Assembly (NCBI RefSeq): GCF_002113885.1
Contig: NW_018406352.1
Coordinates: forward strand, 126,196 to 190,195
Origin: Mizuhopecten yessoensis
Lineage: Eukaryota
Length of the DNA stretch: 64,000 bases
Reading direction: 5' to 3'
Position numbers and translations under genes: made by a program. The stretch's first letter is position 1. Each line of letters opens with the position of its first letter. Below the pieces are notes generated by a model that was given only the letters and a program-made list of their open reading frames with translations, did not search any database and was not told the DNA's origin. Positions 5,788 through 58,927 of the stretch are shown here, piece after piece.

Positions 5788-6333
5788 TGTCAAAACAGGA
5801 CAGTCAGCAGTGTGAGTAACATAATAAGTTGTCAAAACAGGACAGTCAGCAGTGTGAGTAACATAATAAGTTGTCAAAACAGCACAGTCAGCAGTGTGAG
5901 TAACATAATAAGTTGTCAAAACAGCACAGTCAGCAGTGTGAGTAACATAATAAGTTGTCAAAACAGCACAGTCAGCAGTGTGAGTAACATAATAAGTTGT
6001 CAAAACAGCACAGTCAGCAGTGTGAGTAACATAATAAGTTGTCAAAACAGCACAGTCAGCAGTGTGAGTAACATAATAAGTTGTCAAAACAGCACAGTCA
6101 GCAGTGTGAGTAACATAATAAGTTGTCAAAACAGCACAGTCAGCAGTGTGAGTAACATAATAAGTTGTCAAAACAGCACAGTCAGCAGTGTGAGTAACAT
6201 AATAAGTTGTCAAAACAGCACAGTCAGCAGTGTGAGTAACATAATNAAGTTGTCAAAACAGGACAGTCAACAGTGTGAGTAACATAATAAGTTGTCAAAA
6301 CAGGACAGTCAACAGTGTGAGTAACATAATAAG
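5788..6333. repeat. 42-bp minisatellite, 13 copies, in intron 1
   Basis: Unit tgtcaaaacagcacagtcagcagtgtgagtaacataataagt. Confidence 0.97.
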
Positions 6334-9097: not shown

Positions 9098-10590
9098 ATT
9101 TTACAGAACATGTCGGGAAGTGACTCGCTTTGTGAATTTTACAGAACATGTCAGGAAATGACTCGCTTTGTGAATTTTACTGAACACGTCGGGGAAATGA
9201 CTCGTTTTGAGAATTTTACAGAACATGTCGGGAAATGACTCGTTTTGTGAATTTTACCGAACATGTCAGGAAATGACTCGCTTTGTGAATTTTACTGAAC
9301 ACGTCGGGGAAATGACTCGTTTTGAGAATTTTACAGAACATGTCGGGAAATGAGTCGCTTTGTGAATTTTACAGAACACGTCGGGGAAATGACTCTTTTT
9401 GTGAATTTTACAGAACATGTCGGGAAATGACTCTCTTTGTGAATTTTACAGAACACGTCGGGGAAATGACCCGTTTTGGGAATTTTACAGAACATGTCGG
9501 GAAATGACTCGATTTGTGAATTTTACAGAACACGTCGGGGAAATGACCCGTTTTGGGAATTTTACAGAACATGTCGGGAAATGAGTCGCTTTGTGAATTT
9601 TACAGAACACGTCGGGGAAATGACTCTTTTTGTGAATTTTACAGAACATGTCGGGAAATGACTCGCGTTGTGAATTTTACAGAACATGTCGGGAAATGAC
9701 TCGTTGTGTGAATTTTACAGAACATGTCCGGAAATGACTCGCTTTGTGAATTTTACTGAACACGTCGGGGAAATGACTCGTTTTGGGAATTTTACAGAAC
9801 ATGTCGGGAAATGACTCGATTTGTGAATTTTACAGAACACGTCGGGGAAATGACTCGTTTTGGGAATTTTACAGAACATGTCGGGAAATGACTCGATTTG
9901 TGAATTTTACAGAACACGTCGGGGAAATGACCCGTTTTGGGAATTTTACAGAACATGTCGGGAAATGACTCGCGTTGTGAATTTTACAGAACATGTCGGG
10001 AAAAGACTAGCTTTGTGAATTTTACAGAACATGTCGGGAAATGACTCTCTTTGTGAATTTTACAGAACACGTCGGGGAAATGACTCGTTTTGTGAATTTT
10101 ACAGAACATGTCAGGAAATGAATCGCTTTGTGAATTTTACAAAACACATCGGGAAATGACTCGCTTTGTGAATTTTATAGAACATGTCGGGAAATGACTC
10201 GCTTTGTGAATTTTACAGAACACGTCGGGGAAATGACTCGTTTTGTGAATTTTACAGAACATGTCGGGAAATGACTCGCTTTGTGAATTTTACAAAACAC
10301 ATCGGGAAATGACTCGCTTTGTGAATTTTACAGAACATGTCGGGAAATGACTCGCTTTGTGACTTTTACAGAACATGTAGGGAAATGACTCGCTATGTGA
10401 ATTTTACAGAACGTGTCGGGAAATGACTCTCTTTGTGAATTTTACTGAACACGTCGGGGAAATGACCCGTTTTGGGAATTTTACAGAACACGTCGGGAAA
10501 TGACTCGCTTTGGGGATTTTACAGAACATGTCAGGAAATGACTCGCTTTGTGAATTTTACAGAACATGTCAGGAAATGACTCACTTTGTG
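9098..10590. repeat. 38/39-bp minisatellite, about 39 copies, in intron 3
   Basis: Unit ttttacagaacatgtcgggaaatgactcgctttgtgaa and its variant with cacgtcgggg. Confidence 0.97.
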
Positions 10591-11430
10591 AAAAAGGTAG
10601 ATAAAACACTGGCGTAGTTGACATTATTTGCATTGGATTCAATTTAGCTACGGTCGTCAGAGATTGTTTGAAATAAACATAACCTCCCTGGATATAGCAT
10701 GGACTCGGTGAAATGTGCAGAGGCATGTTTACCTGTTAATGTGTACTATATCTGTCATCTAAGCAGAAGTCTGCTTATATTCAAGTATGTTTGTAGTGTT
10801 ATTTAACCCTTTCACCACTATAGACCATAATGGATTCATCCAGATCAATGCATGGGAGAGTCTACTGTAGTTATGTGGGGGTGAAAGGGTTATCTTGATT
10901 ACAATGTGTTGGCCCAAGACGAATCTACAACCTTTATTATGATGACCGCCCCAAATATTGCTAGTACAATGTAAATTGATGTGTGCACAATTTTGTGTAA
11001 TGGTTCAAAAATGGCTGACATGTGACATGGTACAAAAGCATACAGTAGTAATGGGAGAATTTGTAATTTTCCGTTGTAACCTTGTCCACACTAGGCCACA
11101 GAGGTTGAATTATATTCAAGAATACTTGGATTATATAAAAGAAAACATACGTGTTTAGAACAGAAAAATAGGATTTTTTAGATCTTTTAACCCTTTCACC
11201 ACTGTAGACCATACTAGACTCATCCATATCAATACATGGGAGAGTTTACTAAAGTTACTTAGGGGTGGAAGGGTTAATGAATGTGTCCGTTTAAATGTTT
11301 CTGTCAGGAGACCTGCATTTTTTGTTTGAATAGAGTGCAAGACTGATTAGGATCTTGAGATTTGGAGACAGGAAGGCCCTCTATCTTACACATGAGTGTG
11401 ATTTATTTTTGAGATCATGTACCTTTATTA

Positions 11431-13503: not shown

Positions 13504-13626
13504 AATACAACAAAGGGAAGGATCTGACCTTAGGAGAACGTCTGTGCTTTGGAGCATGTGCTGGACTTCTGAGTCAGTCTGCCTCCTATCCCCTGGACAT
13601 CATACGGAGGAGGATGCAAACTGCAG
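13504..13626 (+). CDS. SLC25A42: SLC25A42-like exon 6
   Basis: atatttag|AA; encodes ...[30 protein letters not shown] (third carrier signature); donor G|gtaaca (phase 1). Confidence 0.95.
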
Positions 13627-13977
13627 GTAACATGTTAGCAACATTCCGCAGACGTGTATAGCCAGGTAACATGTTAGCAACATTCCGCAGGTGTGTATAG
13701 CCAGGTAACATGTTAGCAACATTCTGCAGACGTGTATAGCCAGGTAACATGTTAGCAACATTCCGCAGACATGTATAGCCAGGTAACATGTTAGCAACAT
13801 TTCGTAGACGTGTATAGCCAGGTAACATGTTAGCAACATTCAGCAGACGTGTATAGCCAGGTAACATGTTAGCAACATTCTGCAGGTGTGTATAGCCAGG
13901 TAACATGTTAGCAACATTCCGCAGGTGTGTATAGCCAGGTAACATGTTAGCAACATTCTGCAGACGTGTATAGCCAA
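13624..13977. repeat. 39-bp minisatellite, 9 copies, starting at the exon 6 donor
   Basis: Unit caggtaacatgttagcaacattccgcagacgtgtatagc. Confidence 0.97.
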
Positions 13978-14845
13978 GTAGGAATTAAAATTAGAAAAAG
14001 TAAACCTATCTGTATCAAAAAAAAAAAAAAAAGAGTAGAAACTGCTTATTTTAAAATCTAGACTAGTTCAGTTTAGGGCTGTTAACAGTATAATATTGAG
14101 GATGTAATATAGTCATCGCTTTGTCAGCATCCTCGATATCCAGATTTTGCTACGACATAGTCCAGGGGTGCAGAGAGCGAAAGTGAGCGTAACCCCTGGA
14201 TATTGAGTGCTAAAGATGTCGGTGACTCAACTGAAAACTGACAATGAGATTGACCATTTGCAATTGATTTTAGGTGTCGTAGTGTTAACGATATCTCGTG
14301 AACCCCAGATTTGGTCTAGTTCATATTGACACCATACAGAGTAGTATGGTAATGGTGAGTTCTACACAGAATTATGTTTTGGTGGTCATCTGTCAAGTTT
14401 AAGGAGTCAAAGAAGGTTCATGATATTCTTACTTTGGTATCTATGTAATTCATGCAGTCTATGAAGTAAAGATGTCTTTATAGACAGAAATTTCAATAGA
14501 CCAGACTGTTTAGTGATACAATTATAACATAAATTAAGAAATGTCTGTATTAAAAAAAAAAAATGTAAATTAGTTTAACTCATTCACCCCTGAAGACATA
14601 TTTGAACTCCTCCAATTCAAAGGATGGAATAGTTCATTATGAAATTTCGCAGGTTAATGATCATGAATTAACAGAAAACTTTTTCGCTAACTACTACCTA
14701 TGTTTATCATTGAATAGTACGCATCATAAGAAACAACTTCAGAGACAACTTGATCTATGAAGTAAATGATTCGTGGTGATTGTCCATCGTTTTAACACTA
14801 AGTTTGAACACTTTGCAGTGGTTATGATATGAAACCATAAGGTAG

Positions 14846-15233
14846 TATATCAGAACTGGACTGGCGCAGCGAATTTGACCAGGTAGCTCAATTGGTAGAA
14901 TGTCTGTCTAGAGTTAGGAGGGTCCCGGGCTCAAACCCCAATCTGGCCGTTGCATTTATCTTTCTCCTGTTACAAAATTGGCTAGCTTGCCAACCCATGT
15001 TTCAAGCACTGGTAGAATGCTTAGCAAGCCAAGGGGACATCTGAACCCGAGTTGTAAATAGTTGTGTCTTCGGGGGGCGAAGACTTGGAGAAAGAAGGAA
15101 GGAATGTAGCGGAACTGAACTGAGTTGATCGTCGGCAACAGGTAGCTCAATTGGTAGAGTGTCCGTCTAGAGTTCGGGGGGTACCGGGTTCGAATTCCGA
15201 TCTGACTATCGTATTTCCCTTTCTCCTGTTACA
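14846..15233 (+). mobile_element. Miniature non-autonomous LTR retroelement with tRNA-derived LTRs (family 2)
   Basis: Two 129-bp direct repeats (14846-14974, 15105-15233; TGTAGC...GTTACA). PBS-like tggctagcttgcc follows the first LTR, and polypurine ggagaaagaaggaaggaa abuts the second. Each LTR has an A box (TAGCTCAATTGGTAGAG) and a B box (GGTTCGAATTCC in the second, degenerate in the first). Flanks gtag/atag are a candidate 4-bp TSD. Confidence 0.75.
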
Positions 15234-16462
15234 ATAGAATAAATAGTTTGAAGTTCTAATTGAAGATATTGAAGCCTTGAAACTGAACTGTGATCAGCTT
15301 AAGGATCTCTGTACCAAAAACTATAATTAAGTATTGGAACCTCATTTCTCACAGCAAATAGTTTTGAGAAATCATTTCTGAAAAGAAAAGCATACCTTGC
15401 AGACTTTCATGAGAAATAATAAAGATGAAATAAACAAAATTTTATCAACAACAGTGTGTTAAGGTAATAGGATTGTGTCACCATTTCTCAGTAGAATTTC
15501 TTCAAGTTTTGTAGTTATATTGCTTTGAAGTAAAGAAAAATTTCCNATATTAGTATTGCATTAATGTATATCAATTTAATAAATGCTGAAATTGTGTAAA
15601 ATTAATTCTCTATACACGATTTAAAAATTGACATTTTATAATAAAACCATATACACATAGTAATTGCATGTAAGAGTTATCGTTCTTGAAAAACTTCACA
15701 GTAGTGAAATAGGTAGCCGGTTTCCTGAAGTACAGAAAAATGGACACATGTGACTCATTGATAAAAAAACAACTGAATTAATGCCTGGATTGCTTTGAAA
15801 TACTTTAATAGTGAAAGAACATACTGTTCTGTCAATAATAAACATACAATATTCATCAGTTTGATATTAAACATTAGAATTGTGATACTGTCTCCCTACA
15901 TTGGATTTTCAACTAGGGATGTAATTCCTATTTCCGTTTAGCAATACACTCCAATGACCTTAAGAACTCGCTTCAAAAAGTTCACATGACCTATGACCTT
16001 CAGTAGACCTGGATTGGAACCCTGATCTTTTGACTGCTTTACTATCGCTCTAACCAACTGAGTCGATGGAAGTGTTCTGGCCCAAGTGTTCTACAGTTAT
16101 ATCCAAATGGAAGTTAAGGGGAGGTAACTGCATATAGGAAAAACACAGTGAAGTTGGACAGGCATCCTTAAAACATTGATTGAAGAAACCAGTTTAAATC
16201 AAGCGAGTCAGACTTCTTACCTACATATTTAAAGATTGAGATCTTTTCGTCCCCAAATGTCTCTAATAATTCACTGTACCAGATAAAACTGCAAATGAGT
16301 GCCAGCTATCACGAGGGAAACTTCAGGGGGATCCAGTTACTAGATTGTTCGATTAGTTTTTCGCCTCTTTACTGTAACAATTACGCAGTTTGATCATTCT
16401 AAAATAATATCCACAGTTCTAGATGGAGTGTCTAGGACAGGAACAGGGCCTTAAAATGATAA

Positions 16463-22118: not shown

Positions 22119-23756
22119 TCACTTACAATATTTGAGGATTTTAATTGTAATATCTCCCTCATCATCTTCCATCTGTGACCACAGTGTATTCCCAGACCCT
22201 ATGCATATCGCACCTTTATATCCTGCACCTGAGTGCAATGTTCTCAGGTACTGGCCAGTCCCACTTAATAATTCTATTGTCTTCCTCTTCATATCCGCTA
22301 TAATCAGGTTTCCAAAGGAATCGTAGTCAACTGACCATGGACCGAATGTTTCTGGTGTAACAGGCTCCTGTCCCCGGATATCTTCTCCTCTGTAGGTAAA
22401 TAGTTGATCGAGTGTTCTGTCATACACGCCGATATGCATTGTTGAGTTATATGGGATATCTTCTTCACTTTCCTCATTTTCAATACCGTGTACCACAGCA
22501 ACGTTTCCTGTCACTGAACAGTTGGAAATTCTGAATGGAGGTAAGAAATCTGATTTTTCTTCATTGGTGATGGTGTGTAGAACAGATCCTGTGGTGTTGT
22601 GTAAAGTTAAACTGCTCTTTGTACCCACCATAACGCCATCGTTGGTTATGTGTAGACAGCTCGGTTTGTCATTTGCTTTGAACTGTGGTACAGGTGTTGC
22701 TGGTTCTTGTAATTCATATATAGTTCTATCATCACTACAGAACCAGAGATGACCCGTTTCAGGGGACACACATATATCACGGGCATCATTGTGAAGTTCA
22801 ATTTTCTGTTTGGTTTCACCTTTATCATTTATCTGAAGTACTGTTTTCCCGCCAGCATCCAGAATCCAGGGGCAACCTTCTGGAGTTAGGCATATTGACC
22901 AAGCCATCGCTGGGACTGAAAACTGTGATACAACAATTGGGTTATCGAGCAGAACATATAAAGGAGGCTGACCTGGTGATTTCCCAGCGTGAGTGCCTGC
23001 TTTCTCGATGTCAGTGTGACCAGCAGAGCTCTCTTGGCATTGGTCTAATTTACCGATGGTGGATGTAGCAGCCGCTAGTGTTTGTGAATGGCCGGTAGAA
23101 CCAGTGGTAAATTTACCGATTGCCTGTTTGAGATGATCAGTGATTGTTGTACAAGGTGTGTATTGGCAGGTTTGTAATACAGGTGGGTTGGAATCTGTGT
23201 AACTTCCAAGTGTATCGAAGTCAGTGTCAAATATCTCAACATCTGTGCTTGTCTGTAGAGCCTTCTTACATTCTTCTACTTCTGCTAATACAACGTCATA
23301 TCTGTGCTGTTTGTCTTTCTTATAATGTCGTAATAACTCAAAATTACTTCTCTCCATTTCATCACGAATAGAAGTGAAACCTGCTATCAGTTCATCTATT
23401 TCTTGTTTACATTTTACACCTTGGAGCTTCATATTGGAAGAAACTGTCTTGAATTCTGAAGAAGTTTCTGTCATTAGGTGTTCTTTTGCTATGAGATCAT
23501 CTTTAAGAAGAGGAAGTGTGTTCTTTTCTGATAGGTTGACGAAATCCAACATGACCGTTTTTTTCTCCTGAGCAACGACGCTAAGTTCCTCTAGGTTGTG
23601 AGTCTTGTGAACAGATTTTATACTGCAAGTTGTACACATAAGAATTTTACAATCCTGACAAACATAAACAACATCTCTCAGTCTGTGGTTTGGACACTTC
23701 GTACTACCTTTCTGTCTGACAGCTTCCTGGTGAGAGCCTGATATTGCAGCAGCCAT
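22119..23756 (-). CDS. TRIM-like protein copy A (B-box, coiled coil, NHL-like beta-propeller; no RING), 545 aa, intronless
   Basis: B-box pattern CPNH-x7-CQDC-x4-CTTC-x5-HKTH, then a heptad-rich helical region, then NHL-like repeats (e.g. PWSVDYDSFGNLIIAD); long intact ORF with paralogues in the window. Confidence 0.9.
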   Translation of the reverse strand: MAAAISGSHQEAVRQKGSTKCPNHRLRDVVYVCQDCKILMCTTCSIKSVHKTHNLEELSVVAQEKKTVMLDFVNLSEKNTLPLLKDDLIAKEHLMTETSSEFKTVSSNMKLQGVKCKQEIDELIAGFTSIRDEMERSNFELLRHYKKDKQHRYDVVLAEVEECKKALQTSTDVEIFDTDFDTLGSYTDSNPPVLQTCQYTPCTTITDHLKQAIGKFTTGSTGHSQTLAAATSTIGKLDQCQESSAGHTDIEKAGTHAGKSPGQPPLYVLLDNPIVVSQFSVPAMAWSICLTPEGCPWILDAGGKTVLQINDKGETKQKIELHNDARDICVSPETGHLWFCSDDRTIYELQEPATPVPQFKANDKPSCLHITNDGVMVGTKSSLTLHNTTGSVLHTITNEEKSDFLPPFRISNCSVTGNVAVVHGIENEESEEDIPYNSTMHIGVYDRTLDQLFTYRGEDIRGQEPVTPETFGPWSVDYDSFGNLIIADMKRKTIELLSGTGQYLRTLHSGAGYKGAICIGSGNTLWSQMEDDEGDITIKILKYCK

Positions 23757-25585: not shown

Positions 25586-26003
25586 AGTAGGGTCTGTCGG
25601 CATACATCAGCGCTGGTCCTTTTTGCGCGCCCGAGAGTTCGTTATTTCACTTTTTTCTTCCGATTCTTAAATATTGTTCACTTACCTAGGTGTGTGCAAA
25701 ATATTAGGTTTATCATAACAGTAGAATGTACCGAAATACGTCGATAAATACTATTTTTAAGAGGGCGGATCGAGTGTCCACGGTGGTGTTCGCGCGCCCG
25801 AAAATTCGTTAATCAATAAAAAAAATATACCGAAATATAAGAAATATCCTAATAAAAATATGCGAACTATTTCATTACATGCATTACTTAAGGGAAGTAA
25901 CTCGTATGGACCTACCTGTAGAACTCTTAGCCATTCATAAACAAAATAAGAATGTTACCGGGCTCTGCGACGAGGACGCAGTTCTACATAAGAGCCCATT
26001 TAA

Positions 26004-27223
26004 TTAGCTCACCTGGCACGAAGTGTCAAGTGAGCTTATGCCATGGCGCGGCGTCCGTCGTCCGTCCGTCGTCCGTCCGTCCGTCCGTTCGTCCGTCCGT
26101 TCGTCCGGCGTCCGGCGTCAATATTTTACTTTAAGCAAACTGAGATGAAGGGCTACACAGTTTGTTAAAATAAATGACCTTGATCCATTTTCAAGGTCAC
26201 AGGGGTCAAATATGTTAAAAAATTTAAACATCTTCTCGATAACCAAACTGCCAAGGGAGATGCTATTTGGCCAGTAGCATGTTTGGGTGAAGGGCTACCA
26301 AGTTTGTTCAAAGGAATGACCTTCAATTATAATCAAAGTCTCAGGGGTCAATTGTCTTAAAAAAACTTTAAACAACTTCTTCTCAATAACAAAAATGCCC
26401 AGGGTGATGATATTTGGCCAGTAGCATGCTGAGATGAAGGGCTCCAAATGTTGTTCAAATGGATGACCTTCATCCATATTCAAGGTCACAGGGGTCAAAT
26501 ATGTAAAAAAAACTTTAAACAACTTCTTCCCAATAACTAAAATGCCAAGTGTGATGATATTTGGCCAGAAGCATGCTTGGATGAAGGGCTACCAAGTTTG
26601 TTTAAATATATGACCTTCACCCATATTCAAGGTTACAGGGGTCAAATATGTTAAAAACTTTAAACAAGTTCTTCTCAATAACCAAAATGCACAGGTTGAT
26701 AATATTCAGTCAGTAGCATACTAAAATCAAGGGCTACCAATTAAGTTTGTTGAAATGTATGACCTTGAATCATATTCAAGGTCACAAGGAGCAAATATGT
26801 TCAAAATATTTAAACAAGTTGTTCTGAATAACCAAAAGACTCAGGATGTTGATATTTAATCAGTAGCATGCTGGGATCAAGGACTACTATGTTTTGTTAA
26901 AGTGAATGACTTCGACTTATATTCAAGGTCACAGGGGTCAAATTTGTGAAATATTTAAACGACCTCTTCTGAATAACCATGGGTCCCAGGATGTTGATAA
27001 TTTGCAAGTTGCATCCTGAGATGAAAGCTTATACAATGTGTAACACATAATGACTTTGTTCGACTTTCAATCACAGGGGTGAAATGTTTAAAAAAACAAA
27101 ATTGAATGAATTTTAATTATAAATTCTGATAATTTGCCTGTAGCTTTATCTTAGATCACTATTAAGGTTACAAGTGTGAGATTTATACCAGGTGAGCGAT
27201 GAAGGCCCATTGGGCCGCTTGTT
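26004..27223 (+). mobile_element. Non-autonomous Helentron (HINE) family II
   Basis: ttagctcacctgg, (GTCC)n, about 7 internal tandem repeats of about 146 bp, ccaggtgagc and hairpin ggcccattgggcc. Confidence 0.85.
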
Positions 27224-28527
27224 TTATTTTATTTTATGATTTAATTTTTAACTAATTGCCATCAATTTCAAATAATTACATTATGTTTTCAATATTTGTT
27301 GTATATATTATTTCTGTCTCTAATTTTAATCTAATCTAATGTTCTAATATATGTATATTAAAATAGTATTTTTTGTTTAATTAGTTTGTTGTACATAATT
27401 AATAATAATGGTTAACATTTACATCAATTTAGTTCCAGTTGATTTTATATAAAATGATATTCATTTGATCAAATTGAATTCTCAATTTTACAAACAATTA
27501 AAAAAGTTATTTTTTCAAAAAGTAACGTTATACATATTACTGAACTATTTGTTAATTCATTGATTAAGTTATAAGTACATATCATAATATGTAATTAATA
27601 ATGAAAGATTATTTTGAAATCGAAAGATTGAAAACAATAATTATCTGGATTTATTTATCTTATATAATACATTAGTGATGCACAGAGTAGGAGATTCCAG
27701 CTTTTTATTTAATTAATGGTTTATATTTGTGTTTTGTTTTTAAATTTATAGGTGTTTATTTCAGCGTAACAACACAGATCATCACTTATGCAAGTGTACC
27801 TGACGAGGTGAGAAGCTGTGGTTGTTTGATTTGTTTGAGGTGGAGTTTTTATTATTAAATTGTGATATAGGAGTGAGGCACAGAGGAGGACAGTATAAAC
27901 CAATTCATGCAGTCTACCCTGATTTAGCCTCCCTGGGTATCATTGGGACTTACAAGCTTTATGGTTATTAATGGGTTTTTTTTTATCTATATTTTGTTTT
28001 TAATTGTATAGGTATTTATTTCATCTTAGTAACACAGATCATTCATTTTTGCCAGTGCACCTGACGAGGTGAGAAGCTGTGGTTGTTTGAGTTATATTAT
28101 AAGATATATTATTATTTATTAATGTCTTAGTTAATTTTAATTTTTTTTATTGATATCTATTCATACTCATACCCTTTGACCCTGCTACCATCCCTTTTTT
28201 TATAAAGAGTCACTTTCCCGCCTGCAGGGTTTCAAGTGTAATTTATCTAAGACTCGCTTATTGTAACTCATTTTTTTTCTCTTTCTGGTATTTTTAATAC
28301 CTTCGATAGAACACTGTGGGATAGGAGACAGTTCTAATGAACAGAACTCCCCGCCTGAGATCGGAAAAAAGATTTTGCAGCAAGCTATTGTCTATCGGAG
28401 GATCCTATACTTATATGTATGTTATGATATCGATAAGCAAATATAGTTATAGAAACTTAAATTTAACCATGTTTTCCTACCTATCCCGTTTTGTATCACT
28501 GAAATGGTCCTAACCTATACGCAGTAC

Positions 28528-29125
28528 ATGTCCTATGATACAGACCCCCGTCTTGCGGTTGGCCTGCACAGGAAGGGATAACTAGAGATGTAACTTTATA
28601 TTTTTATTGGTTGTGATGGTTTTAACACTAACAGTTCTTGTGAAACATAGTTGATAGCCCCCGCCTTGGGTTGGCATAAACTATGATATCATTGTAAGCT
28701 GAAAAGGGGCACAGAGGGGCAGACTCCAGACCTCCTGAAGTCTCAGTATGCACCAATTATTGCTTGGATCAGTAGCAATCCAATCTGGTACAGTCTCCCT
28801 GGGTATCCAAAGGGTCCTAACCTATACACAGTATGAAATCACCGACTACAGGGACGTCCGCTACTGTGTGAACGGCACTACAAGATCAGCTTACGAAAAC
28901 ATCAAAATGTCTAGCCTCAGCAGGATGAAGCGGCAAATGATCCAGTTTGCAGACTGCAAGGCTACAGTGAAACGGCATTCAACCGTTCTAATACATCTTG
29001 ATGTCAAACGATATCTTGCAAAAGGAGGGAAACTATACCGCCTTCAGAATGGAACCTTGGCAGCCCCGGGAAACGCCAAAGAAATGATGAAGACAAGCTT
29101 TTTTCACCGCGTGCAGTTCTTATGA
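28528..29125 (+). pseudogene. Degenerate intronless Tpt1/KptA-family (RNA 2'-phosphotransferase / ADP-ribosyltransferase) gene
   Basis: ORF 28748-29125 has CVNGT..YENI...LSRMKRQMIQF...VLIHLDV....GGKLYRLQNGTLAAPGN....SFF.RV, which follows the Tpt1 NAD-binding lobe (HGT; GLS.M.R.HIH; ID; G..FY.S.NG...PGN). Upstream broken frames give IGCDGF and WISSNPIWYSLP, resembling DGF and IRANQGHS. Total span is about 200 codons. Confidence 0.7.
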
Positions 29126-29140
29126 ACTTGCAAACAAAAC

Positions 29141-29175
29141 GACCCTTTTTAGGGCCACCAAAGTCTCTAAAAGGG
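29141..29175 (+). terminator. Histone-mRNA-type 3' stem-loop plus candidate histone downstream element
   Basis: aaaac-GACCCT-TTTT-AGGGCC-acca (6-bp stem with one mismatch, 4-nt loop) starting 16 nt after the TGA, then AAAAGGG at 29169-29175. Confidence 0.7.
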
Positions 29176-29299
29176 TCCATTGATGCTCGAAATTACGTAC
29201 TTCTATCTGTCCTGTCCTGTCCGCTCTGAATTACGCATTCCCTGACCTAACCGTACCGCGGCGCGTTCGCTTTGCTTATGACACGATATAGCCACCATG

Positions 29300-31232
29300 T
29301 ATAGTCAGGGATGTAAATTGTTTTGTTGTACTGAAACAATAAGGGATGTAAATTTAAGTTATATTATTGTACTAGACACAAAGTTAGAGATGTTGACCTG
29401 TACAGTCAGGGACGTAAATTAAAGTTGTATTATTGTACCGTTACAGTTAGGGATGTTGGCATGCATAGTCAGGGATGTGAATTTAAGTTGTATTATTGTA
29501 CCGCTACAGTTAGGGAGGGATGTTGACCTGTACAGTTAGGCATGTAAATTTAAGTTAATACTATTGTACCGGTGCAGTAAGGGATGTTAACATATACAGT
29601 CAGGGAATAATCTGTACAGTCAAGGATGTATATTTAAGTTGTATAACTGTACCAATACAGTTAGGAGACGTTGACCTGTACAGTCAGAGATGTAAATTTA
29701 AGATATATTATTGTAAAGGAATGTTTACATGTACAGTCAGGGATGTAAATTTAAGTTGTTTTATTATACCGGTACCGTAAGGGATGTTGACATGTACAGT
29801 GAGGGATGTTGACCTGTACAGTCAGGGATGTAAATTTAAGTTGTGTTATTGTATTGTTTCAGCTAAGATGTTGACCTGTACAGTCAGGGATGTAAATTTA
29901 AGTTGTTTTATTATACCGGTACCGTAAGGGATGTTGACCTGTATAGCATCCCTCACTGTACCTGGACAATAAAACAACTTAAATTTGCATCCCTGACTGT
30001 ACCGGTACAACAATATAACTTAATTTTACACCCTCGACAGTACAGGTCAACATCTCTAACTGTACCGGTACAATAATGGAACTTAAATTTACAACCTTGA
30101 GTATACAGGTCAACATACTAGCTGTAAAAGTTCAATAAAACAACTTAAATGTACGTCCCTGACTGTACAGGTCAACATCCTAGCTGTAACAGTTCAATAA
30201 AACAACTTAAATTGACATCCCTGAGTGTACAGGTCAACATCTCTAACTGTACCGGTACAATAATACAACTTAAATTTACATCCCTGAGTGTACAGGTCAA
30301 CATCCTAGCTGTAAAAGTTCAATAAAACAACTTAAATTTACGTCCCTGACTGTACAGGTCAACATACCTCACTGTACCGGTACTGTAATATAACTTAAAT
30401 TTACATCCCTGACTGTACATCTCAACATCCCTAACTGTACTGGTACAGTAAAAAAACTTAAATTTACATCCCTGACTGTACAGGTCAACATACCTCACTG
30501 TACCGGTACTGTAATATAACTAAAATTTACATCCCTGACTGTACAGGTCAACATCCCTAACTGTACTGGTACAGTAAAACAACTTAAATTTACATCCCTG
30601 ACTGTACAGGTTAACATCCCTAACTGTACCGGTACTGTAATAAAACTTAAATTGACATCCCTCAGTGTACAGGTCAACATCTCTAACTGTACCGGTACAA
30701 TAATACAACTTAAATTTACATCCCTCAGTGTACAGGTCAACATCTCTAACTGTACCGGTACAATAATACAACTTAAATTTACATCCCTGAGTGTACAGGT
30801 CAACATCCTAGCTGTAAAAGTTCAATAAAACAACTTAAATTTACGTCCCTGACTGTACAGGTCAACATACCNTCCCTGACTGTACAGGTCAACATCCCTA
30901 ACTGTACTGGTACAATAAAACAACTTAAATTTACATCCCTGACTGTACAGGTTAACATCCCTAACTGTACCGGTACTGTAATATAACTTAAATTTACATC
31001 CCTGAGTGTCAGGTCAACATCCCTAACTGTACCTGTACAATAATACAACTTAAATTTACATCCCTGAGTGTACAGGTAAACATCCCTAACTGTACCGGTA
31101 CAATAAAACAACTTAAATTTACGTCCCTGACTGTACAGGTCATCATCCCTAACTGTACTGGTACAATAAAACAACTTAAATTTACATCCCTGACTGTACA
31201 GGTAAACATCCCTAACTGTACCGGTACAATAA
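29300..31232. repeat. 63-bp satellite array with an internal orientation switch at about 29945
   Basis: Unit gggatgttgacctgtacagtcagggatgtaaatttaagttgttttattgtaccggtacagtta; forward to about 29945, reverse-complement afterwards. Confidence 0.93.
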
Positions 31233-31339
31233 TATTACTTATGCGTGTAGAAAAAAAATTAAAGATCATCATCTGTATGAGCTTTTAGCTCTAAGTCCGA
31301 ATGTGGGTCATTGTTAAACCTATCCAAAACTAGATTTAA

Positions 31340-37911: not shown

Positions 37912-38969
37912 ATCTATAACATATACTGAATGTTTGAAAACAACTGAACGTTTGAGTATGTAAAGCATTGCGCATTTTATTGCACGTATTCAATAATGAT
38001 TTTTTCAAGAGTAAATGAGTGATGAAAATCTTACTGCAAATTCAGAAATACTATCGTCAACCGTCAAAGATTTAGACAAGAGGTTAACTTGAAGTTAACA
38101 TGAAAATGCGCAATATGCAGACACACACTGGTATGCATTGCATACGAACATTTCAGATTTTTTATGGGTTTTTTTAAAAACCATAACCACAATATTTTAC
38201 TAGCTTAGTAAAATAATTCTAAAAAGCAACTCATACTTTAAGAAACTTGTATGAACAAATTATAAAGTAATGGATGAGCGAATTGCAGCTTCTGATCAGA
38301 ACAAAATAAACAATTTACACTGTATACAACATAATATACAAAACATTGCTTCATATATATAAAAACAATCTCTCTCACTTTCACAATTTTTACAACTACA
38401 CAATAATCACACGGAAAACAATATTGCACATGTAAGGTGTGGGTTGTATTCTACAAAATTACCACATTGACTACTTAAACAAACATAAACCATTACAGAG
38501 TAGGCAGGAATCTACTGCAGTGTAATCAAGTATTGCACGATAGCAATCGAGTAGGCTGTTATTGCCAACAATTACAGTGTTCCGACAACGATAAATTAAT
38601 GTAAATTAATGGTCAATCCACGCCTGGAATATGTCACAGCAAAAAGGAAGGCTCTGTGTGCGCCACCTTGTTGATGATGTATATTTGTTGTGCTAATTTA
38701 CTCAACGCTAGAAATGTGTGACGATTTCCACACCACGAGAATTTTCATTTTTGCAGCAACCGATTATCACAAGGTGACATGTCATTTTAACTTAACTTGT
38801 AACATTATATTATTAGAGGATACGTTATGAGATAGTTAACTTACATTGGTCATTTAGGTCTTTCCCTTGACGGATTGTTTACTGTGTCTTCTGTTCTGAC
38901 GGGCTGACAAAAACGAGAGCGAACAGTGATAGATGTGAATGTTATAATAGAGACACGTTATATAATGAA

Positions 38970-40619
38970 CTATTTACAACTGAAGAACGTGTTGCTATCG
39001 CACTTACAATATTTGAGGATTTTAATTGTACAATGTCCCTCATCATCTCGCATCTGTGACCACAGTGTATTCTCAGACCCTATGCATATCGCACCTTTAT
39101 CTTCTGCACCTGAGTGCAATGTTCTCAGGTACTGGCCAGTCCCACTTAATAATTCTATTGTCTTCCTCTTCACATCCGCTATAATCAGGTTCCCAAAGGA
39201 ATCGTAGTCAACTGAGAATGGACCGAATGTTTCTGGTGTAGCAAGCTCCTGTCCGCGGATACCATCCCCTCTGTAGGTAACTAGGTGATTGAGTGTACTG
39301 TCATACACGGCGATGTGCATTGTTGAGTTATATGGGAAACTGGTACAGCTTATGTGTATTACAGCTATGTTTCTCGTCACTAAACAGTTGGAAATTCTCA
39401 ATGGTGGTACAAAATCTGGTTGTTCCTCATTGGTGATTGTGTGTAGAACAGATCCTGAGGCTGTGTGTATAGTTAAACTGTTTGTTGTACCCACAATTAC
39501 ACCATCACTGGTTATGGATAGACAAGAAGGCTTGTCCTTTGTATCGAACTTTGGTACAGGTGTTGCTGGTTCTTGTAATTCATAAATAGTTCTATCCTTA
39601 CAACCGAACCAGAGACGACCCGTTTCAGGGGACACACATATATCAATAATATCACTGTGTAGTTCAATCTTCTGTTTTGTTTCACCTTTATCATTCATCT
39701 GAAGCACTGTTTTCCCGCTAGCATCAAGAATCCAGAGGTTACCTTCTGGAGTTGTACACATTGACAGAGCTACTGCTGACACTGGAAACTGTGATATAAT
39801 AATTGAGTTATCGAGCAGTTCATACGAAGGAGGATGGTCTGGTGAATTTTCAGCGCGAGTGCCTGCTTTCTCGATGTCAGTGTGACCTGCAGAGCTCTCT
39901 TGGCATTGGTCTAATGTACCGATGGTGGATGTAGCAGCCGCTTGTGTTTGTGAATGGACGTCAGAACCAGTGGTAAATTTACCGATTGCCTGTTTGAGAT
40001 GATCAGTGATTGTTGTACAAGGTGTGTATTGGCAGGTTTGTAATACAGGTGGGTTGGTATCTGTGTAACTCCCAAGTGTATCAAAGTCAGTGTAAAATAT
40101 CTCAACATCTGTGCTTGTTTGTAGAGCCTTTTTACATTCTTCTACTGCTGCTAATACAACGTCATATCTGTGTTGTTTGTCTTTCTTCTGATGTCGTAAT
40201 AACTCCAAATTACTTCTCTCCATTTCATCACAAGTAGAAGTGAAACCTGCTATCAGTTCATCTATTTCTTGTTTACATTTTTCGCCTTGGAGCTTCATAT
40301 TGGAAGAAACTTTCTTGAATTCTGAAGAAGTTTCTGACATTAGGTGTTCTTTTGCTATGAGATCATCTTTAAGATGAGGAATTGTGTTCTTTTCTGAAAG
40401 GTTGACGAAATCCAACATGGCCGTTTTTTTCTCCTGAGCAAAAACGCTAAGTTCCTCCAGGTTGTGAGTCCTGTGAACAGATTTTATACTGCAAGTTGTA
40501 CACATAAGAATTTGACAATCCTTACAAACATAAACAACATCTTTCAGTAGGTGGTTCGGACATTTCGTACTACCTTTCTGTCTGACAGCCTCCTGACCGC
40601 CTGATATTGCAGCAGCCAT
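38970..40619 (-). CDS. TRIM-like protein copy B, 549 aa (stop-loss adds a 10-aa C-terminal tail)
   Basis: Intact ORF, collinear and highly similar to copy A; TGC replaces the TGA found in A, C and D. Confidence 0.9.
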   Translation of the reverse strand: MAAAISGGQEAVRQKGSTKCPNHLLKDVVYVCKDCQILMCTTCSIKSVHRTHNLEELSVFAQEKKTAMLDFVNLSEKNTIPHLKDDLIAKEHLMSETSSEFKKVSSNMKLQGEKCKQEIDELIAGFTSTCDEMERSNLELLRHQKKDKQHRYDVVLAAVEECKKALQTSTDVEIFYTDFDTLGSYTDTNPPVLQTCQYTPCTTITDHLKQAIGKFTTGSDVHSQTQAAATSTIGTLDQCQESSAGHTDIEKAGTRAENSPDHPPSYELLDNSIIISQFPVSAVALSMCTTPEGNLWILDASGKTVLQMNDKGETKQKIELHSDIIDICVSPETGRLWFGCKDRTIYELQEPATPVPKFDTKDKPSCLSITSDGVIVGTTNSLTIHTASGSVLHTITNEEQPDFVPPLRISNCLVTRNIAVIHISCTSFPYNSTMHIAVYDSTLNHLVTYRGDGIRGQELATPETFGPFSVDYDSFGNLIIADVKRKTIELLSGTGQYLRTLHSGAEDKGAICIGSENTLWSQMRDDEGHCTIKILKYCKCDSNTFFSCK

Positions 40620-43019: not shown

Positions 43020-45020
43020 CAACAACAGCTGGTCGCTGCAAGTCATTTATTCCTCGGAATTTTTGTACTTAAAATGCCCCGTGGTTTTCGAGTAGAAAAA
43101 CAGATCCGTAGAAAAGCAGAGAAACAGTGGCGAAGGACCAAATCATACATTCATTAACAGATTTATAGGGAACAATGTCGGCTAGTTGGTTCACTTCTCA
43201 TTCAGTCAAAGAAGTCTTATTATTTCGAAAGGATTGAAGAATGTGGTAAAGACCATAGACACCGTTTTAGACTCACCAAACATTTAATGGGTCAGAAAGG
43301 TGAAATTGTCCTACCAAGCTGTAATTCTGAAAAAGACTTGTCGAACATGTTCAGTGACTAATTTCTTCTAAAATCAGCTCGATCAAGAAAAATATGTCGG
43401 AAGTGAACTCTCCTGCTGATGATATTTCTGTCATGATTGCTGACATTAAATTTGATGGGGGACCATTGACAAAGCTCTCACCAACAACCCAGGACGAGGT
43501 GCGCAATATCATCATGACCTCGCAATCGAAGTCCTGTGAGCTTGATCCACTGCCTAGAGACCTATTAAATCAATGTATTGAAGCACTGCTTTCCTTGATT
43601 ACCTCAATTATGAACAATCAATGGCGGCTGAGTCAAAGGTTCCACGGTGTTTCAAGAAGGTACATGTTAGACCATTGTTGAAGAAGCCTGGAATGGACAA
43701 GGAGGATTTGAAGAACTACCGCCCAGTTTCAAATCTGCCTTTTCTGTCTAATAATGACATAGCTTCTGCATTGAATAACAAGTGCAGAGCGGTGCTTGGC
43801 ATGCTGGATTTGTCAGCTGCATTTGACTTCATCGACCATGGCATACTTTATAAACGTCTTGAGTACTCGCATGGAGTGATTTCTACCGCACTATGCTGGA
43901 TACAGTCTTATCTGAGTTAACGACGACAGTGTGTTGCCATCAGATGTACCACCTCACAGGAAAAAGTAATACATTTCAGGGTTCCTCAAGGGTCGGTGTT
44001 AGGTCACGAAAATATTGCCTGTACTCTAATCCGATCCGAGAGATTTGTCGTCGCCATAGCCTTCGCTATCATTGCTATGCTGATGACACACAAATGTGCA
44101 TGGTCATCAAACCACAGAACAGTTGGGATACAATTACAGAAAATCTGAAAGCTTGTCTGACAGATATCTGTACCTGGATGAACGCAAACATTCTAAAGCC
44201 TAATCCGGAAAAGACGAAACTAATCGTCTTTTCCCCAAAGTTTTAGCAAACAATGGCTCTCCAGCTCAAGGTCGGTGCCAGAAATATTGAGACTGTCCAA
44301 GCTGTTAAAAACCTAGGGATATACTTTGATCGAACGCTATTGCCAAATCCTGTTACTACCAGATAAGGAACATCGGCTGTATCCGACAGTTTATAACTGC
44401 AGATACATGCAATATGTTTGTGCATTCACTTGTTACCTCTCGGTAGGATTATGGGAACGCCCTGATCTGTGGTATATCTGACAAACGAACTAGTCGTCTG
44501 CAGAGGGTCTAGAACACTAAAGCACGGCTGATCACTAGTACTCGAAAGAAAGAGCACATCACGCCTGTGCTATATTCATTACACTGGTTAACTGTACGAT
44601 ACAGGTCGCAGTACAAAATGTTGGTGTACACATACAAGGCACAAGGAACAGCTCTCCAGTACCTACATTAGCTTGTTACCCGGTATCAGCCGTCGCGATT
44701 ACTGCGGTCGGAGTCAGAATCATTGTTGTCTGTCCTAAAATCTCGTACTGTGACCTATGGAAACCGGTGCTTTAAGAGGGTTTCGGCCACATTGTGAAAT
44801 AGCTTACCATCTGCTATTAGAAAGTCAAAAACCCTGGCAAAATTCAAGATAGACATCAAAACTCACCTCTTCATGCCTGCATTTTTGGCTCTTTGCAAAA
44901 ATGTCATGTAAATACTAATATATAATACTATTATCCATATGGTGTAAAGCGCTTTAGAGTAATTTTACAAATTATATAGGGCGTTATATAAATGCTGTAT
45001 ATTAATTATTGTTATAATTA
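43020..45020 (+). mobile_element. Degenerate 5'-truncated L2/CR1-group LINE (RT ORF2)
   Basis: Motifs [48 protein letters not shown] and YADDTQ spread over broken frames; 3' tail gtaaagcgcttt...gcgttatataaatg. Confidence 0.88.
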
Positions 45021-48543: not shown

Positions 48544-50062
48544 TCACTTACAGTATTTGAGGATTTCAATTGTAATATCTCCCTCATCATCTACCATCTG
48601 TGACCACAGTGTATTCCAAGACCCTAAGAATATCGGACCTTTATTTTCTGCTCCTGAGTGCAATGTTTTCAGGTACTGGCCAGTCCCAATTAATAATTCC
48701 ATTGTATTTCTCTTCATATCCTCAATAAGCAGGTTTCCAAAGGAATCGTAGTCAACTGACCACGGACCGAATGTTTCTGGTGTAATTGGCTCCGGTCCCC
48801 GGATACCTTCCCCTCTGTAGGTAAATAGGTGATTGAGTGATCTGTCATACACGGCGATGTGCAATGTTAAGTTATATGGGAAATCTTCTTCACTCCCCTC
48901 CATTTTAATACCGTGTACCACAGTTATGTTTCCCGTCACTGAACAGATGGAAATTCTAAATGATGGTAAACAATCTGATTTCTCCTCACTGGTGATGGTG
49001 TGTAAAACAGATCCTGTGACAGTGTGTATAGTTAAACTGTTTTCTGTACCCACAATTACACCACCGTTCGTTATGCCTAGACAATACGGTTTGTCGTCTG
49101 TTTTGAACTGTGGTACAGGTGTTGCTGGTTCTTGTAATTCATATATAGTTTTGTCCTCACTACATGAACCAGAGACGACCCGTTTCAGGGGACACACATA
49201 TACCATTGGTGTTACTGTGAAGTTCAATCTTCTGTTTGGTTTCACCTTCATCATTTATCTGAAGCACTGTTTTCCTGCCAACATCATACGAAGGTGGATG
49301 ACCTATGGTCTCGATGTCAGTGTGACCAACAGAACTCCCTTGACATTGATATACTGTGTCGATAGCGGATGTAGCAGCCGCTTGTGTTTGTGAATGGCCG
49401 GTAGAACCAGTGGCAAATTTACCGATTGCCTGTTTGAGATGATCAGTGATTGTTGTACAAGGTGTGTATTGGCAGGTTTGTAATACAGATGGGTTGGGAT
49501 CTGTGTAACTCCCAAGTGTATCAAAGTCAGTGTCAAATATCTCAACATCTGTGCTTGTTTGTAGAGCCTTCTTACAATCTTCTACTTCTGCAAATACAAC
49601 GTCATATATGTGCTGTTTGTTTTTCTTTTGATGTCGTAATAACTCCAAATTACTTCTCTCCATTTCATCACAAATAGAAGTGAAGCCTGCTATCAGTTCA
49701 TCTATTTCTTGTTTACATTTTTCACCTTGGAGCTTCATATTAGAAGAAACTGTCTTGAATTATGAAGAAGTTTCTGTCATTTGGTGTTCTTTTGATATAA
49801 GGTCATTTGTTAGATGAGGAAGTGTGTTGTTCTCTGATAGGTTGACGAAATCCAGCATGGCTATTTTCTTCTCCTGAGCAACGACGCTAAGTTCCTCCAG
49901 GTTGTGAGTCTTGTGAACAGATTTTATACAGCAAGTTGTACACATGAGAATTTTACAATCTTGACAAACATAAACAACATATTTCAGTCTGTGGTTCGGA
50001 CATTTCGAACTACCTTTCTGTCTGACCGTCTCCTGACGCGAGCCTGATATTGCTGCAGCCAT
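48544..50062 (-). pseudogene. TRIM-like copy C, pseudogene
   Basis: Collinear with A/B/D, but has GAA>TAA at 49760-49762, in-frame deletions in the linker and first propeller blade (near 49290-49310), and a 1-bp insertion frameshift near 49165 (tggttcAtgtagt vs tggttctgtagt). Confidence 0.88.
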
Positions 50063-57292: not shown

Positions 57293-58927
57293 TCACTTAC
57301 AATATTTGAGGATTTTAATTGTAATATGTCCCTCATCATCTTCCATCTGTGACCACAGTGTTTTCCCAGACCCTATGCTTATCGCACCTTTATATTCTTC
57401 ACCCGAGTCCAATGTTCTCAGGTACTGGCCAGTCCCAGTTAACAATTCTATTGTATGCCCCTTCACATCCGCTATAATCAGGTTTCCAAAGGAATCGTAG
57501 AGAACTGACCATGGACCGAAAGTTTCTGGTGTAACAGGCTCCTGTCCCTGGATCCCTTCCCCTCTGTAGTCAAATAGGTGATTGAGGGTTCTGTCATATA
57601 CGCCGATATGCATTGTTGAGTTATATGGGAATTCTTCACTCTCTTCGTTATCTATAATGTGTACCACAGCTATGTTTCCTGTCACTGAACAGCTGGATAT
57701 TTTAAATGGTGGTAAGAAGTCTGATTGTTCCGCTTTCGTGATAGTGTGTAGAACAGATCCTGTGACTGTGTGTAAAGATAAACTGTTTTCTGTACCCACA
57801 ATTACACCACTATTGGTAATGCCTAGACAAGATGGTTTGTCGTCTGTTTTGAACTGTGGTACAGGTGTGGCTGGTTCTTGTATTTCATATATAGTTCTAT
57901 CATCACAACAGAACCAGAGACGACCCGTTTCAAGGGACACACATATATCATAGATAATATTTTGAAGTTCAATTTTCTGTTTTGTTTCACCTTTATCATT
58001 GATCTGAAGCACTAATTCCCCGCCATCATCCAGTATCCAGAGGTTACCTTCTGGTGTTAAACTCATTGACAGAGCTGCTGCTGAGACTGGAAACTGTGAT
58101 ATAATAATTGAGTTATCGAGTAGTTCATTCAAAGGAGGTTGACATATTGACTTCCCAGCGTGAATGCATGCTTTCTCGATGTCAGTGTGACCAGCAGAAC
58201 TCCCTTGACATTGGTTTAATGTGTCGATGGTGGATGTAGCAGCCACGAGTGTTTGTGAAGGGCCGGTAGAACCTGTGGTAAATTTACCGATTGCCTGTTT
58301 GAGATGATCAGTGATTGTTGTACAAGGTGTGTATTGGCAGGTTTGTAATACAGGTGGGTTGGTATCTGTGTAACTCCCAAGTGTATCAAAGTCAGTGTCA
58401 AATATCTCAACATCTGTGCTTGTTTGTAGAGCCTCCTTACATTCTTCTACTTCTGAAAATACAATATCATATCTGTGTTGTTTGTCTTTCTTCTGATGTC
58501 GTAATAACTCCAAATTACTTCCCTCCATTTCATCACAAATACAAGTGAAGCCTGCTATCAGTTCATCTATTTCTTGTTTACATTTTTCACCTTGGAGCTT
58601 CATATTTGAGGAAACTGTCTTGAATTCTGAAGAAGTTTCTGTCATTAGGTGTTCTTTTGATATGAGGTCATCTTTAAGATGAGGAAGTGTGTTCTTTTCT
58701 GATAGGTTGACGAAATCCAGCATGACCGTTTTTTTCTCCTGAGCAACGACGCTAAGTTCCTCCAGGTTGTGAGTCTTGTGAACAGATTTTATACAGCAAG
58801 TTGTACACATAAGAATTTTACAATCCTGACAAACATACACAACATCTTTCATTCTGTGGTTGGGACACTTCGTACTACCTTTCTGTCTGACAGTCTCCTG
58901 GTGAGAGCCATATATTGCAGCAGCCAT
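57293..58927 (-). CDS. TRIM-like protein copy D, 544 aa
   Basis: Intact ORF with the same B-box/coiled-coil/NHL-like layout. Confidence 0.9.
   Translation of the reverse strand: MAAAIYGSHQETVRQKGSTKCPNHRMKDVVYVCQDCKILMCTTCCIKSVHKTHNLEELSVVAQEKKTVMLDFVNLSEKNTLPHLKDDLISKEHLMTETSSEFKTVSSNMKLQGEKCKQEIDELIAGFTCICDEMEGSNLELLRHQKKDKQHRYDIVFSEVEECKEALQTSTDVEIFDTDFDTLGSYTDTNPPVLQTCQYTPCTTITDHLKQAIGKFTTGSTGPSQTLVAATSTIDTLNQCQGSSAGHTDIEKACIHAGKSICQPPLNELLDNSIIISQFPVSAAALSMSLTPEGNLWILDDGGELVLQINDKGETKQKIELQNIIYDICVSLETGRLWFCCDDRTIYEIQEPATPVPQFKTDDKPSCLGITNSGVIVGTENSLSLHTVTGSVLHTITKAEQSDFLPPFKISSCSVTGNIAVVHIIDNEESEEFPYNSTMHIGVYDRTLNHLFDYRGEGIQGQEPVTPETFGPWSVLYDSFGNLIIADVKGHTIELLTGTGQYLRTLDSGEEYKGAISIGSGKTLWSQMEDDEGHITIKILKYCK

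Follow-up and report, generated by a model that had tools for sequence, protein, structure and literature searches.

A dead Tpt1/KptA-like gene fragment in the scallop Mizuhopecten yessoensis and the histone-type stem-loop of its intact relatives in a bivalve Mutator-like transposon family

Results and Discussion

A 5'-truncated Tpt1/KptA-like gene fragment

We analyzed a stretch of 64,000 nucleotides from the genome of the scallop Mizuhopecten yessoensis (assembly GCF_002113885.1, contig NW_018406352.1, positions 126,196 to 190,195 of the forward strand), which is referred to as the window throughout. It contains, on its plus strand, the remnant of a gene of the Tpt1/KptA family that is followed closely by a degraded version of the stem-loop known from the 3' ends of histone mRNAs. 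An initial annotation, made from the sequence alone, had proposed that this region represents a decayed copy of a non-histone gene ending in a histone-type signal, and the letters that it had quoted for the stop codon, the hairpin, the ACCA flank and the purine-rich run are all present where it had placed them. To delineate the remnant, we made use of intact relatives from the same and from other genomes; in the following, their proteins (P0001 and so forth) and their loci (L001 and so forth) are referred to by number.

The gene fragment comprises the C-terminal 99 codons and the stop codon of a Tpt1/KptA-like gene (28826-29125, plus strand; stop codon at 29123-29125), as delineated by tblastn, blastn and Pfam PF01885. 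When the window was searched by tblastn with the intact relatives, their residues 82-180 aligned at 28826-29122, with 90% identity to the M. yessoensis protein P0001. At the DNA level, blastn recorded 94% identity to the locus of this intact paralogue (L001) over 28829-29247, and the homology ended on both sides of this segment. The open reading frame (ORF) in which the fragment is embedded (28748-29125, 125 amino acids) matched the PF01885 profile (PTS_2-RNA, Tpt1/KptA) with 39.9 bits (E = 6e-10; cutoff 26). The match begins at ORF residue 32 and spans profile positions 94-173 of 177, which corresponds to the C-terminal lobe, and the family assignment proposed for the C-terminal half of the frame is thereby borne out; a weak NCBIfam match of the ORF is in line with it. 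The first 26 codons of the ORF, which start with an ATG (28748-28825, plus strand) and were matched by neither P0001 nor P0002 in tblastn, are fortuitous, since homology to P0001 and L001 starts only at 28826-28829.

A decayed frame of about 200 codons had originally been envisaged, and in this respect the annotation had to be cut back to the 99 codons given above: no N-terminal half was found by tblastn (E ≤ 10) or blastn, nor was one detected within 28528-28825 by tblastn and tblastx with P0001, P0002 and the L003 locus. No other Tpt1-derived match was present anywhere in the window (tblastn with the intact relatives, E ≤ 10). The frame of the fragment is open, with one near-invariant motif residue substituted (protein alignment), yet it possesses neither a start codon of its own nor the N-terminal lobe, so that only the C-terminal lobe of the two-lobe Tpt1 fold is represented. 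It also lacks the region that bears three of the four catalytic-tetrad residues (motif alignment). The gene fragment in the window is certainly dead, and its earlier description as a dead copy of a non-histone gene family is correct; with its N-terminal lobe absent and its stem damaged (see below), the window copy does nothing.

The homology between the window and L001 does not stop at the site where a histone-type transcript would be cleaved but continues for about another 90 nt, and hence points to a copy made at the level of DNA, not to a retroposed mRNA. This finding, along with the fact that the 5' end of the fragment joins other repeat sequence, rules out a processed (retroposed) pseudogene. 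The downstream flank common to the window and L001 (29186-29247, plus strand; blastn end point, motif census and alignment) contains two copies of a short motif described below. On the upstream side lies a 99-nt repeat (28706-28804, plus strand) with 82% and 78% identity in blastn to positions 3618-3716 and 4062-4160 of L004, where the two copies are located beside the transposase end of a second M. yessoensis element. A 21-nt direct repeat with one mismatch (28507-28527 and 28814-28834) overlaps with its second copy the 5' breakpoint of the fragment and may mark the rearrangement that cut the gene short.

The hairpin downstream of the fragment

The degraded histone-type 3' stem-loop with its flanks occupies positions 29136-29161 of the plus strand. 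Its 5' arm is formed by 29141-29146, its loop by 29147-29150, its 3' arm by 29151-29156, and an ACCA flank (29157-29160) follows. A purine-rich run that is identical in L001 is found 9-15 nt past ACCA (29169-29175, plus strand), the position of the histone downstream element (HDE) as read from the sequence; purine-rich runs located 7-15 nt past the stem are HDE candidates in most of the related copies. As the initial annotation had noted, no histone ORF is seen upstream of the hairpin: the upstream ORF is the PF01885-matching frame, and no histone coding sequence is present there.

A search with Rfam at the gathering threshold gave no match in the whole window. Under relaxed thresholds, the best match was Histone3 (RF00032) at 29136-29180 with 25.6 bits (E = 2e-5 for a 201-nt slice; E = 0.006 for the whole window), compared with a gathering score of 34 bits for this family. 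The score stays below the threshold because one stem pair is non-standard; five of the six pairs of the window stem are standard ones, while all six are so in each of the eight relatives. The identification of a histone 3' stem-loop thus holds as far as the best-matching family and its position are concerned, but not for the strength of the signal in the window copy itself. A second Histone3 match in the window (38162-38206, 22.6 bits) is an AT-rich hairpin without an upstream ORF and was rejected as a chance match.

Could the hairpin at 29136-29161 likewise be a chance match that happens to lie beside a pseudogene and is unrelated to histone processing? Along with the low RF00032 score, its folding energy of -5.1 kcal/mol (z = -0.7) is no better than that of shuffled sequences, and a loose stem-loop pattern is not rarer in the window than expected by chance. 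However, the hairpin is embedded in the 94%-identical block shared with L001, and the orthologous position in this intact paralogue carries a stem-loop that scores 35.9 bits and folds with -12.2 kcal/mol (z = -3.5); the energies of the relatives range from -9.8 to -12.2 kcal/mol. This alignment refutes a chance origin, to which we attach practically no credence. Taken alone, the window hairpin is only suggestive, and it is the relatives, not the window copy on its own, whose sequences show that the signal exceeds chance.

A short motif (CTCG/T, a few A/T, then ACGCA) was found in all scallop loci only about 30-300 nt downstream of the stem-loop and on the gene strand. A motif census located it at 29186-29199 and 29224-29238 in the window, at 10604-10860 in L005, at 10428-10500 in L004, at 6598-6680 in L002 and at 10621 in L006; in L005 it lies inside 99-bp tandem repeats. 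Possible roles of this motif are those of a terminator, of an extended processing element or of a subterminal repeat bound by the transposase.

Intact relatives encode a conserved Tpt1/KptA-type protein

An intact paralogue of 180 amino acids (P0001) is encoded in the same genome (LOC110463684; loci L001 and L005). A second M. yessoensis paralogue (P0003; L003 and L004) has an interrupted frame and is annotated as a 117-amino-acid product; the interruption relative to P0001 is evident from tblastx, which places the two halves of the L003 frame in different frames. Further relatives were recovered from Pecten maximus (P0002, 179 amino acids; LOC117340572, L002), from Ylistrum balloti, whose two copies (P0004 in L006 and P0152 in L011) are 99% identical over 11 kb, from the bivalve-like ENA assembly ERZ26273219 with its several members (P0006 in L008; P0155 in L009 and L010) and from Pinctada imbricata (P0009; L007). 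With the exception of the interrupted L003/L004 frame, each coding region of the relatives is one continuous ORF of 170-185 codons. Runs of N occur in L001, L004 and L005 as well as in a metagenome contig (L013) and were kept unaltered. The intact genes have no intron and carry a TATA-like box about 35-42 nt in front of the ATG; this combination of a short leader, a TATA-like box and the absence of introns is the compact architecture of histone genes.

The intact relatives match PF01885 over the full profile with 64-98 bits. An AlphaFold model of P0001 (pLDDT 93.7) had its best matches in the PDB among TRPT1, Tpt1 and KptA structures, with query-normalized TM-scores (TMq) of 0.77-0.88; the mammalian TRPT1 entries 7yw3 and 7yw2 (TMq 0.85-0.88) were followed by archaeal and bacterial KptA/Tpt1 proteins (about 0.78), and KptA-DNA complexes (9ld6 series) were among the matches. 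Most members of the family retain the LRH, (I/V)R..GHS, HGT and R..(I/V)HF motifs (protein alignment). The catalytic tetrad of Tpt1 consists of Arg-His-Arg-Arg, and the residues matching it are kept in P0004, P0006, P0155, P0009 and others, as judged by motif alignment and not from a residue-numbered reference. Synonymous differences between species have reached saturation (pS about 0.7-0.9), whereas non-synonymous ones (pN) amount to 0.23-0.50; the ORFs are hence under purifying selection, and neutral sequence should be randomized at this distance.

The intact genes are followed by a conserved histone-type stem-loop

The initial annotation had predicted intact copies that end in the stem-loop, and these were found: canonical stem-loops scoring above the RF00032 gathering threshold follow the gene in L001 and L005 (35.9 bits), in L002 (35.7 bits), in L006 and L011 (39.4 bits) and in L009 and L010 (40.2 bits). 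Intact copies devoid of a stem-loop had been named as evidence that would speak against the annotation; what these intact copies show is a signal above threshold. At every locus that bears a stem-loop, the stem starts 8-31 nt past the stop codon. Over about 190 kb of the relatives' loci, the stem-loop pattern is confined to the 3' ends of these genes and to their strand. The 16-nt stem-loops of L002, L009 and L010, and those of L001 and L003, are letter-identical to stem-loops of histone genes listed in a study whose pipeline recognizes genuine histone genes by such 16-nt sequences (PMC7807067).

The mean pairwise identity amounts to 82% for the 26-nt core of the stem-loop and to 61% for the subsequent 40 nt, compared with 44-51% for control flanks. 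Across nine sequences, 98% of the stem cells are paired, and the sole unpaired cell belongs to the window copy.

In Ylistrum, a second gene is arranged in the same manner. Directly upstream of the Tpt1-like gene, both copies contain an ORF of 173 amino acids (L006, 9114-9704; L011, ~3000-3596) that resembles GDSL/SGNH hydrolases (Lipase_GDSL_2, 43.5 bits; cutoff 32.9) and is followed, 28 nt past its stop codon, by a histone stem-loop of its own (36.6 bits in L011 and 29.6 bits in L006). Judged by its sequence, the GDSL-like gene is a second non-histone gene with a histone-type signal. Apart from this stem-loop, and with the rejected hairpin at 38162-38206 set aside, no other Histone3 match, stem-loop or histone ORF was detected in the window or in the 20-kb flanks. 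Membership of these genes in a histone cluster is ruled out by the lack of neighboring stem-loops and histone ORFs in this same range.

The gene resides in Mutator-like transposons

The initial annotation had suspected that the gene is the cargo of a mobile element or of an endogenous virus. The former proved to be the case, as the gene is part of a Mutator-like element (MULE). This is best seen in the ENA assembly, where L010 (10.3 kb) and L009 (6.7 kb) encode identical proteins at different loci and are 97-99% identical at the DNA level. Their homology starts and stops exactly at terminal inverted repeats (TIRs) of about 285 bp, and each of the two insertions is bounded by its own 9-bp direct duplication. 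On the strand opposite to the Tpt1-like gene, L010 encodes a product of 705 amino acids that matches the Transposase_mut (PF00872, 28.1 bits; cutoff 21) and MULE (PF10551, 28.8 bits; cutoff 27.6) profiles, and it also encodes a 255-amino-acid product with a weak GDSL match that is not accompanied by a stem-loop. The transposase segment is missing from L009, in which the Tpt1-like gene is retained. L008 represents an element of about 3.2 kb with TIRs of about 330 nt, whose sole cargo is the Tpt1-like gene with its stem-loop. Collectively, the relatives display the transposase, the long TIRs with 9-bp duplications and the copies at several loci that end at the element termini, the features by which a MULE is recognized.

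Traces of the same element surround other members of the gene family, and homologues of the L010 transposase are located in L004, L005 and L007. The two paralogous M. yessoensis loci are collinear over more than 6 kb and contain, 3-6 kb upstream of the gene and on the opposite strand, OTU-like and transposase-like frames homologous to the L010 transposase; these remains are split into several frames, and no single long ORF is left. In L005, a pair of 205-nt inverted repeats brackets the whole unit. The same OTU-transposase is found upstream of the Tpt1-like gene of Pinctada (L007). Inverted repeats were also looked for around the P. maximus, Ylistrum, Pinctada and L004 copies, and none were found. 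The transposase of assembly ERZ26273219 is closest to proteins of Pinctada and Saccostrea (48%). Transposase relatives that carry OTU and MULE domains are present in oysters, mussels, clams, a brachiopod and tunicates.

Two further observations concern transposases. One relative of the element's transposase, P0200 from Mytilus coruscus (859 amino acids), has an annotated NADAR domain (NAD/ADP-ribose metabolism); along with the Tpt1-like gene, this domain is a hint that the MULE lineage is recurrently linked to ADP-ribose chemistry. In L004, a separate ORF (2374-2805, plus strand) matches the N-terminus of the Pfam 'Mutator' family PF20700 (E = 1.6e-13); it adjoins the OTU-MULE remnant on its left, lies on the other strand and is probably a different MULE inserted nearby.

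The second part of the suspicion, that the fragment was left behind by an endogenous virus with histone-type mRNA ends, is very improbable. The compact, intronless style of the gene would fit such an origin, and nothing further does. The called genes and the Pfam lists of eight loci of 12-20 kb, as well as the window ORFs, included no capsid, polymerase or other viral hallmark, public viral contigs being outside this search. The flanks contain solely fragments of ordinary repeats, namely of transposase, OTU, GDSL, reverse-transcriptase/RNase H and integrase, and the combination of TIRs with 9-bp duplications identifies the element as a cut-and-paste transposon.

In the window itself, a TIR-like segment (25620-26005, plus strand; blastn and alignment) matches the inverted-repeat arrays of L005, with 83-92% identity to positions 3316-4003 and, in inverted orientation, with 76% to positions 10941-11164 (blastn). 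Its orientation is that expected of a left end. Neither a right-hand repeat partner nor a transposase homologue is present in the window. The 2.8 kb between this segment and the gene fragment are unrelated sequence and contain a tandem array with a period of 147 bp (26140-27025). The stretch from 25620 to 29247 is possibly a decayed and internally rearranged copy of the element.

An S-phase-coupled transposon gene?

Tpt1/KptA homologues remove 2'-phosphates from RNA and can ADP-ribosylate phosphorylated ends of nucleic acids. To our knowledge, the stem-loop/U7 pathway is, in the textbook view, exclusive to replication-dependent histone mRNAs. In the reading that we favor, with a probability of about 0.75, positions 28826-29247 of the window are what is left, inactive and truncated at the 5' end, of an accessory gene that belongs to a Mutator-like transposon family of pteriomorph bivalves. 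The intact gene is, in this reading, a histone-style unit whose transcript would be processed by SLBP and the U7 small nuclear ribonucleoprotein (snRNP) and coupled to S phase. With its TATA-like box, about 180 codons devoid of introns, a canonical histone stem-loop and a purine-rich element, the intact element gene would give rise to a transcript to which SLBP binds at the stem-loop and which the U7 snRNP cleaves a few nucleotides past the stem. The resulting mRNA would be non-polyadenylated, and its abundance and translation would track DNA replication, as has been described for histone mRNAs, whose metabolism relies on SLBP binding and U7-dependent cleavage in place of a poly(A) tail (PMC10730174). 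Through such a gene, the transposon would make a homologue of NAD+-dependent RNA 2'-phosphotransferases and nucleic-acid-end ADP-ribosyltransferases in S phase. The task of this enzyme in the life cycle of the transposon is a matter of speculation: it may act on nucleic-acid ends made in transposition, or it might conceivably serve to evade host control. Both the SLBP/U7-dependent processing and the S-phase expression are what we infer from the sequence features described above.

Several observations weigh against this reading. The L003/L004 stem-loop, with a perfect stem and an altered 3' flank, reaches only 27.4 bits, and that of L008, with a perfect stem and an unusual loop, only 28.3 bits, both below the RF00032 threshold. 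The distant relatives from Pinctada (L007) and from a metagenome contig (L013) are devoid of the stem-loop. In P0001 and P0002, the Arg-His dyad retained by the other members is missing its first Arg. In the window, the link of the TIR-like segment at 25620-26005 to the gene fragment is only suggestive. Three further points of this kind bear directly on two rival explanations. Across the nine sequences, there is one compensatory change in the stem, and its covariation is not significant, as 111 of 500 shuffles reach the observed value; since the stem hardly varies, the case rests on its conservation. AATAAA is located directly past the stem-loop of the Ylistrum and the L009/L010 genes, so that polyadenylation might occur instead of, or in addition to, stem-loop processing, which leaves room for dual processing. 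Finally, neither a transposase homologue nor inverted repeats are present in the examined flanks of the P. maximus and Ylistrum genes, which may be immobilized or domesticated copies.

The lack of significant covariation and the AATAAA sequences would both be accounted for if the stem-loop were an inert relic, acquired when a Pack-MULE-style event captured the 3' flank of a host histone gene, with the mRNA being polyadenylated in the ordinary way and the hairpin playing no role; MULEs are known to capture fragments of host genes and extra ORFs (PMC6446971). We regard this as unlikely. A relic of 26 nt should not persist where synonymous sites are saturated, nor should its position 8-31 nt past the stop codon be kept in every lineage. 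In addition, the second gene of Ylistrum bears a stem-loop of its own, and the stem is broken only in the one copy that is clearly dead, that of the window.

The bare flanks in P. maximus and Ylistrum would, in turn, be expected if the Tpt1-like gene were a domesticated gene of the scallop host whose proximity to transposases is incidental, the window fragment then being the remnant of a segmental duplication. The annotation of the genes by NCBI as ordinary loci and the purifying selection acting on the ORFs would accord with such an origin. It is nevertheless improbable in our judgment: insertions bounded by TIRs and target-site duplications are present at two loci of one genome with identical protein products, the gene also resides inside a third TIR-bounded element (L008), and transposase homologues lie alongside it in three taxa.

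Beyond the single gene, one may ask whether the transposon family as a whole took over the SLBP/U7 pathway for its accessory genes (the Tpt1/KptA-type enzyme and, in Ylistrum, the GDSL/SGNH hydrolase), tying them to S phase and becoming the first conserved client of this pathway from a selfish element that is not a histone gene. Considerations in favor of and against this broader proposal appear to us evenly balanced. In the part of the literature that was covered, we found no precedent for non-histone or transposon genes bearing a histone stem-loop, nor for Tpt1/KptA proteins in transposons.

If a conserved non-histone client of the histone 3' pathway does exist, the pathway can be recruited by other genes, and the transposon gene would provide a natural reporter of what suffices for S-phase coupling. 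It would also represent a case in which the timing of a transposon accessory enzyme to DNA replication is encoded in sequence. Through the gene family, an OTU/MULE transposon lineage is connected with NAD+/ADP-ribose chemistry on nucleic-acid ends, and transcriptomes based on poly(A) selection may systematically miss genes of this type.

Comparison with known systems

The 3' end of the Tpt1-like genes resembles that of histone mRNAs in its 6-bp stem and 4-nt loop, its A-rich 5' flank and ACC(A/C) 3' flank, its proximity to the stop codon and the purine-rich run that follows; the intronless gene with its short leader and the two 16-mers identical to histone stem-loops add to this likeness. It differs from the histone system in that the ORF does not encode a histone and that the gene is carried by a transposon outside of a histone cluster, and the processing here is predicted. 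The stem-loop followed by a usable AATAAA in some copies is reminiscent of genes of the H2A.X type, whose mRNAs can end either at the stem-loop or in a poly(A) tail (PMC7807067); these dual-processing genes, however, are still histone genes.

The encoded proteins share the two-lobe fold and, in most family members, the conserved motifs with Tpt1, KptA and TRPT1. Unlike TRPT1, the family members are only about 180 amino acids long, are encoded by intronless, transposon-borne genes and lack the Gly-rich insert of the eukaryotic TRPT1 proteins (alignment).

Long TIRs, 9-bp target duplications, a DDE transposase of the Mutator family and deletion derivatives are all shared with other MULEs. So are the extra ORFs, whose orientation is independent of that of the transposase, as in MULEs with accessory ORFs such as maize MuDR (mudrB), Arabidopsis Hiun (VANB/VANC) and yeast Mutyl (mutB). 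The M. yessoensis and Pinctada copies resemble the OTU-bearing element MuDR-6_HM in combining an OTU domain with the transposase. A survey of MULEs covers mollusc groups and an OTU-bearing cnidarian group and mentions no accessory gene of the present type (PMC6446971); from the elements of this survey, the present family is set apart by its accessory genes, which encode a Tpt1/KptA homologue and, in a subset of the copies, also a GDSL/SGNH-like hydrolase, and by the histone-type 3' end.

Other features of the window

Aside from the gene fragment, the window contains a tandem family of intronless genes of about 545 codons whose products combine an N-terminal B-box zinc finger with a beta-propeller-like C-terminal half (TRIM-like). 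Three of these genes are intact (22119-23756, 38970-40619 and 57293-58927, minus strand; window ORFs), and one is broken (fragments within 48544-49738, minus strand). The sequence of a B-box protein from the window recurs without any change in the M. yessoensis assembly GCA_002113885.2. A satellite of about 1.9 kb with 63-bp units (29342-31241), which begins about 100 nt past the end of the fragment's homology, consists of two inverted arrays with arms of up to 150 nt that are about 90% complementary. Besides the 147-bp array mentioned above, tandem arrays are present at 5788-6333 (period 42 bp), 9098-10592 (38/77 bp) and 13624-13980 (39 bp). Two sub-threshold RNA matches were recorded: one resembles eukaryotic large-subunit rRNA (16169-16320, minus strand; 45.7 bits, threshold 50), and the other resembles a tRNA and is possibly the head of a short interspersed element (15139-15204, plus strand; 26.3 bits, threshold 29). 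An ORF on the plus strand (43893-44246) carries a reverse-transcriptase-like YADD motif and represents a fragment of a long interspersed element.

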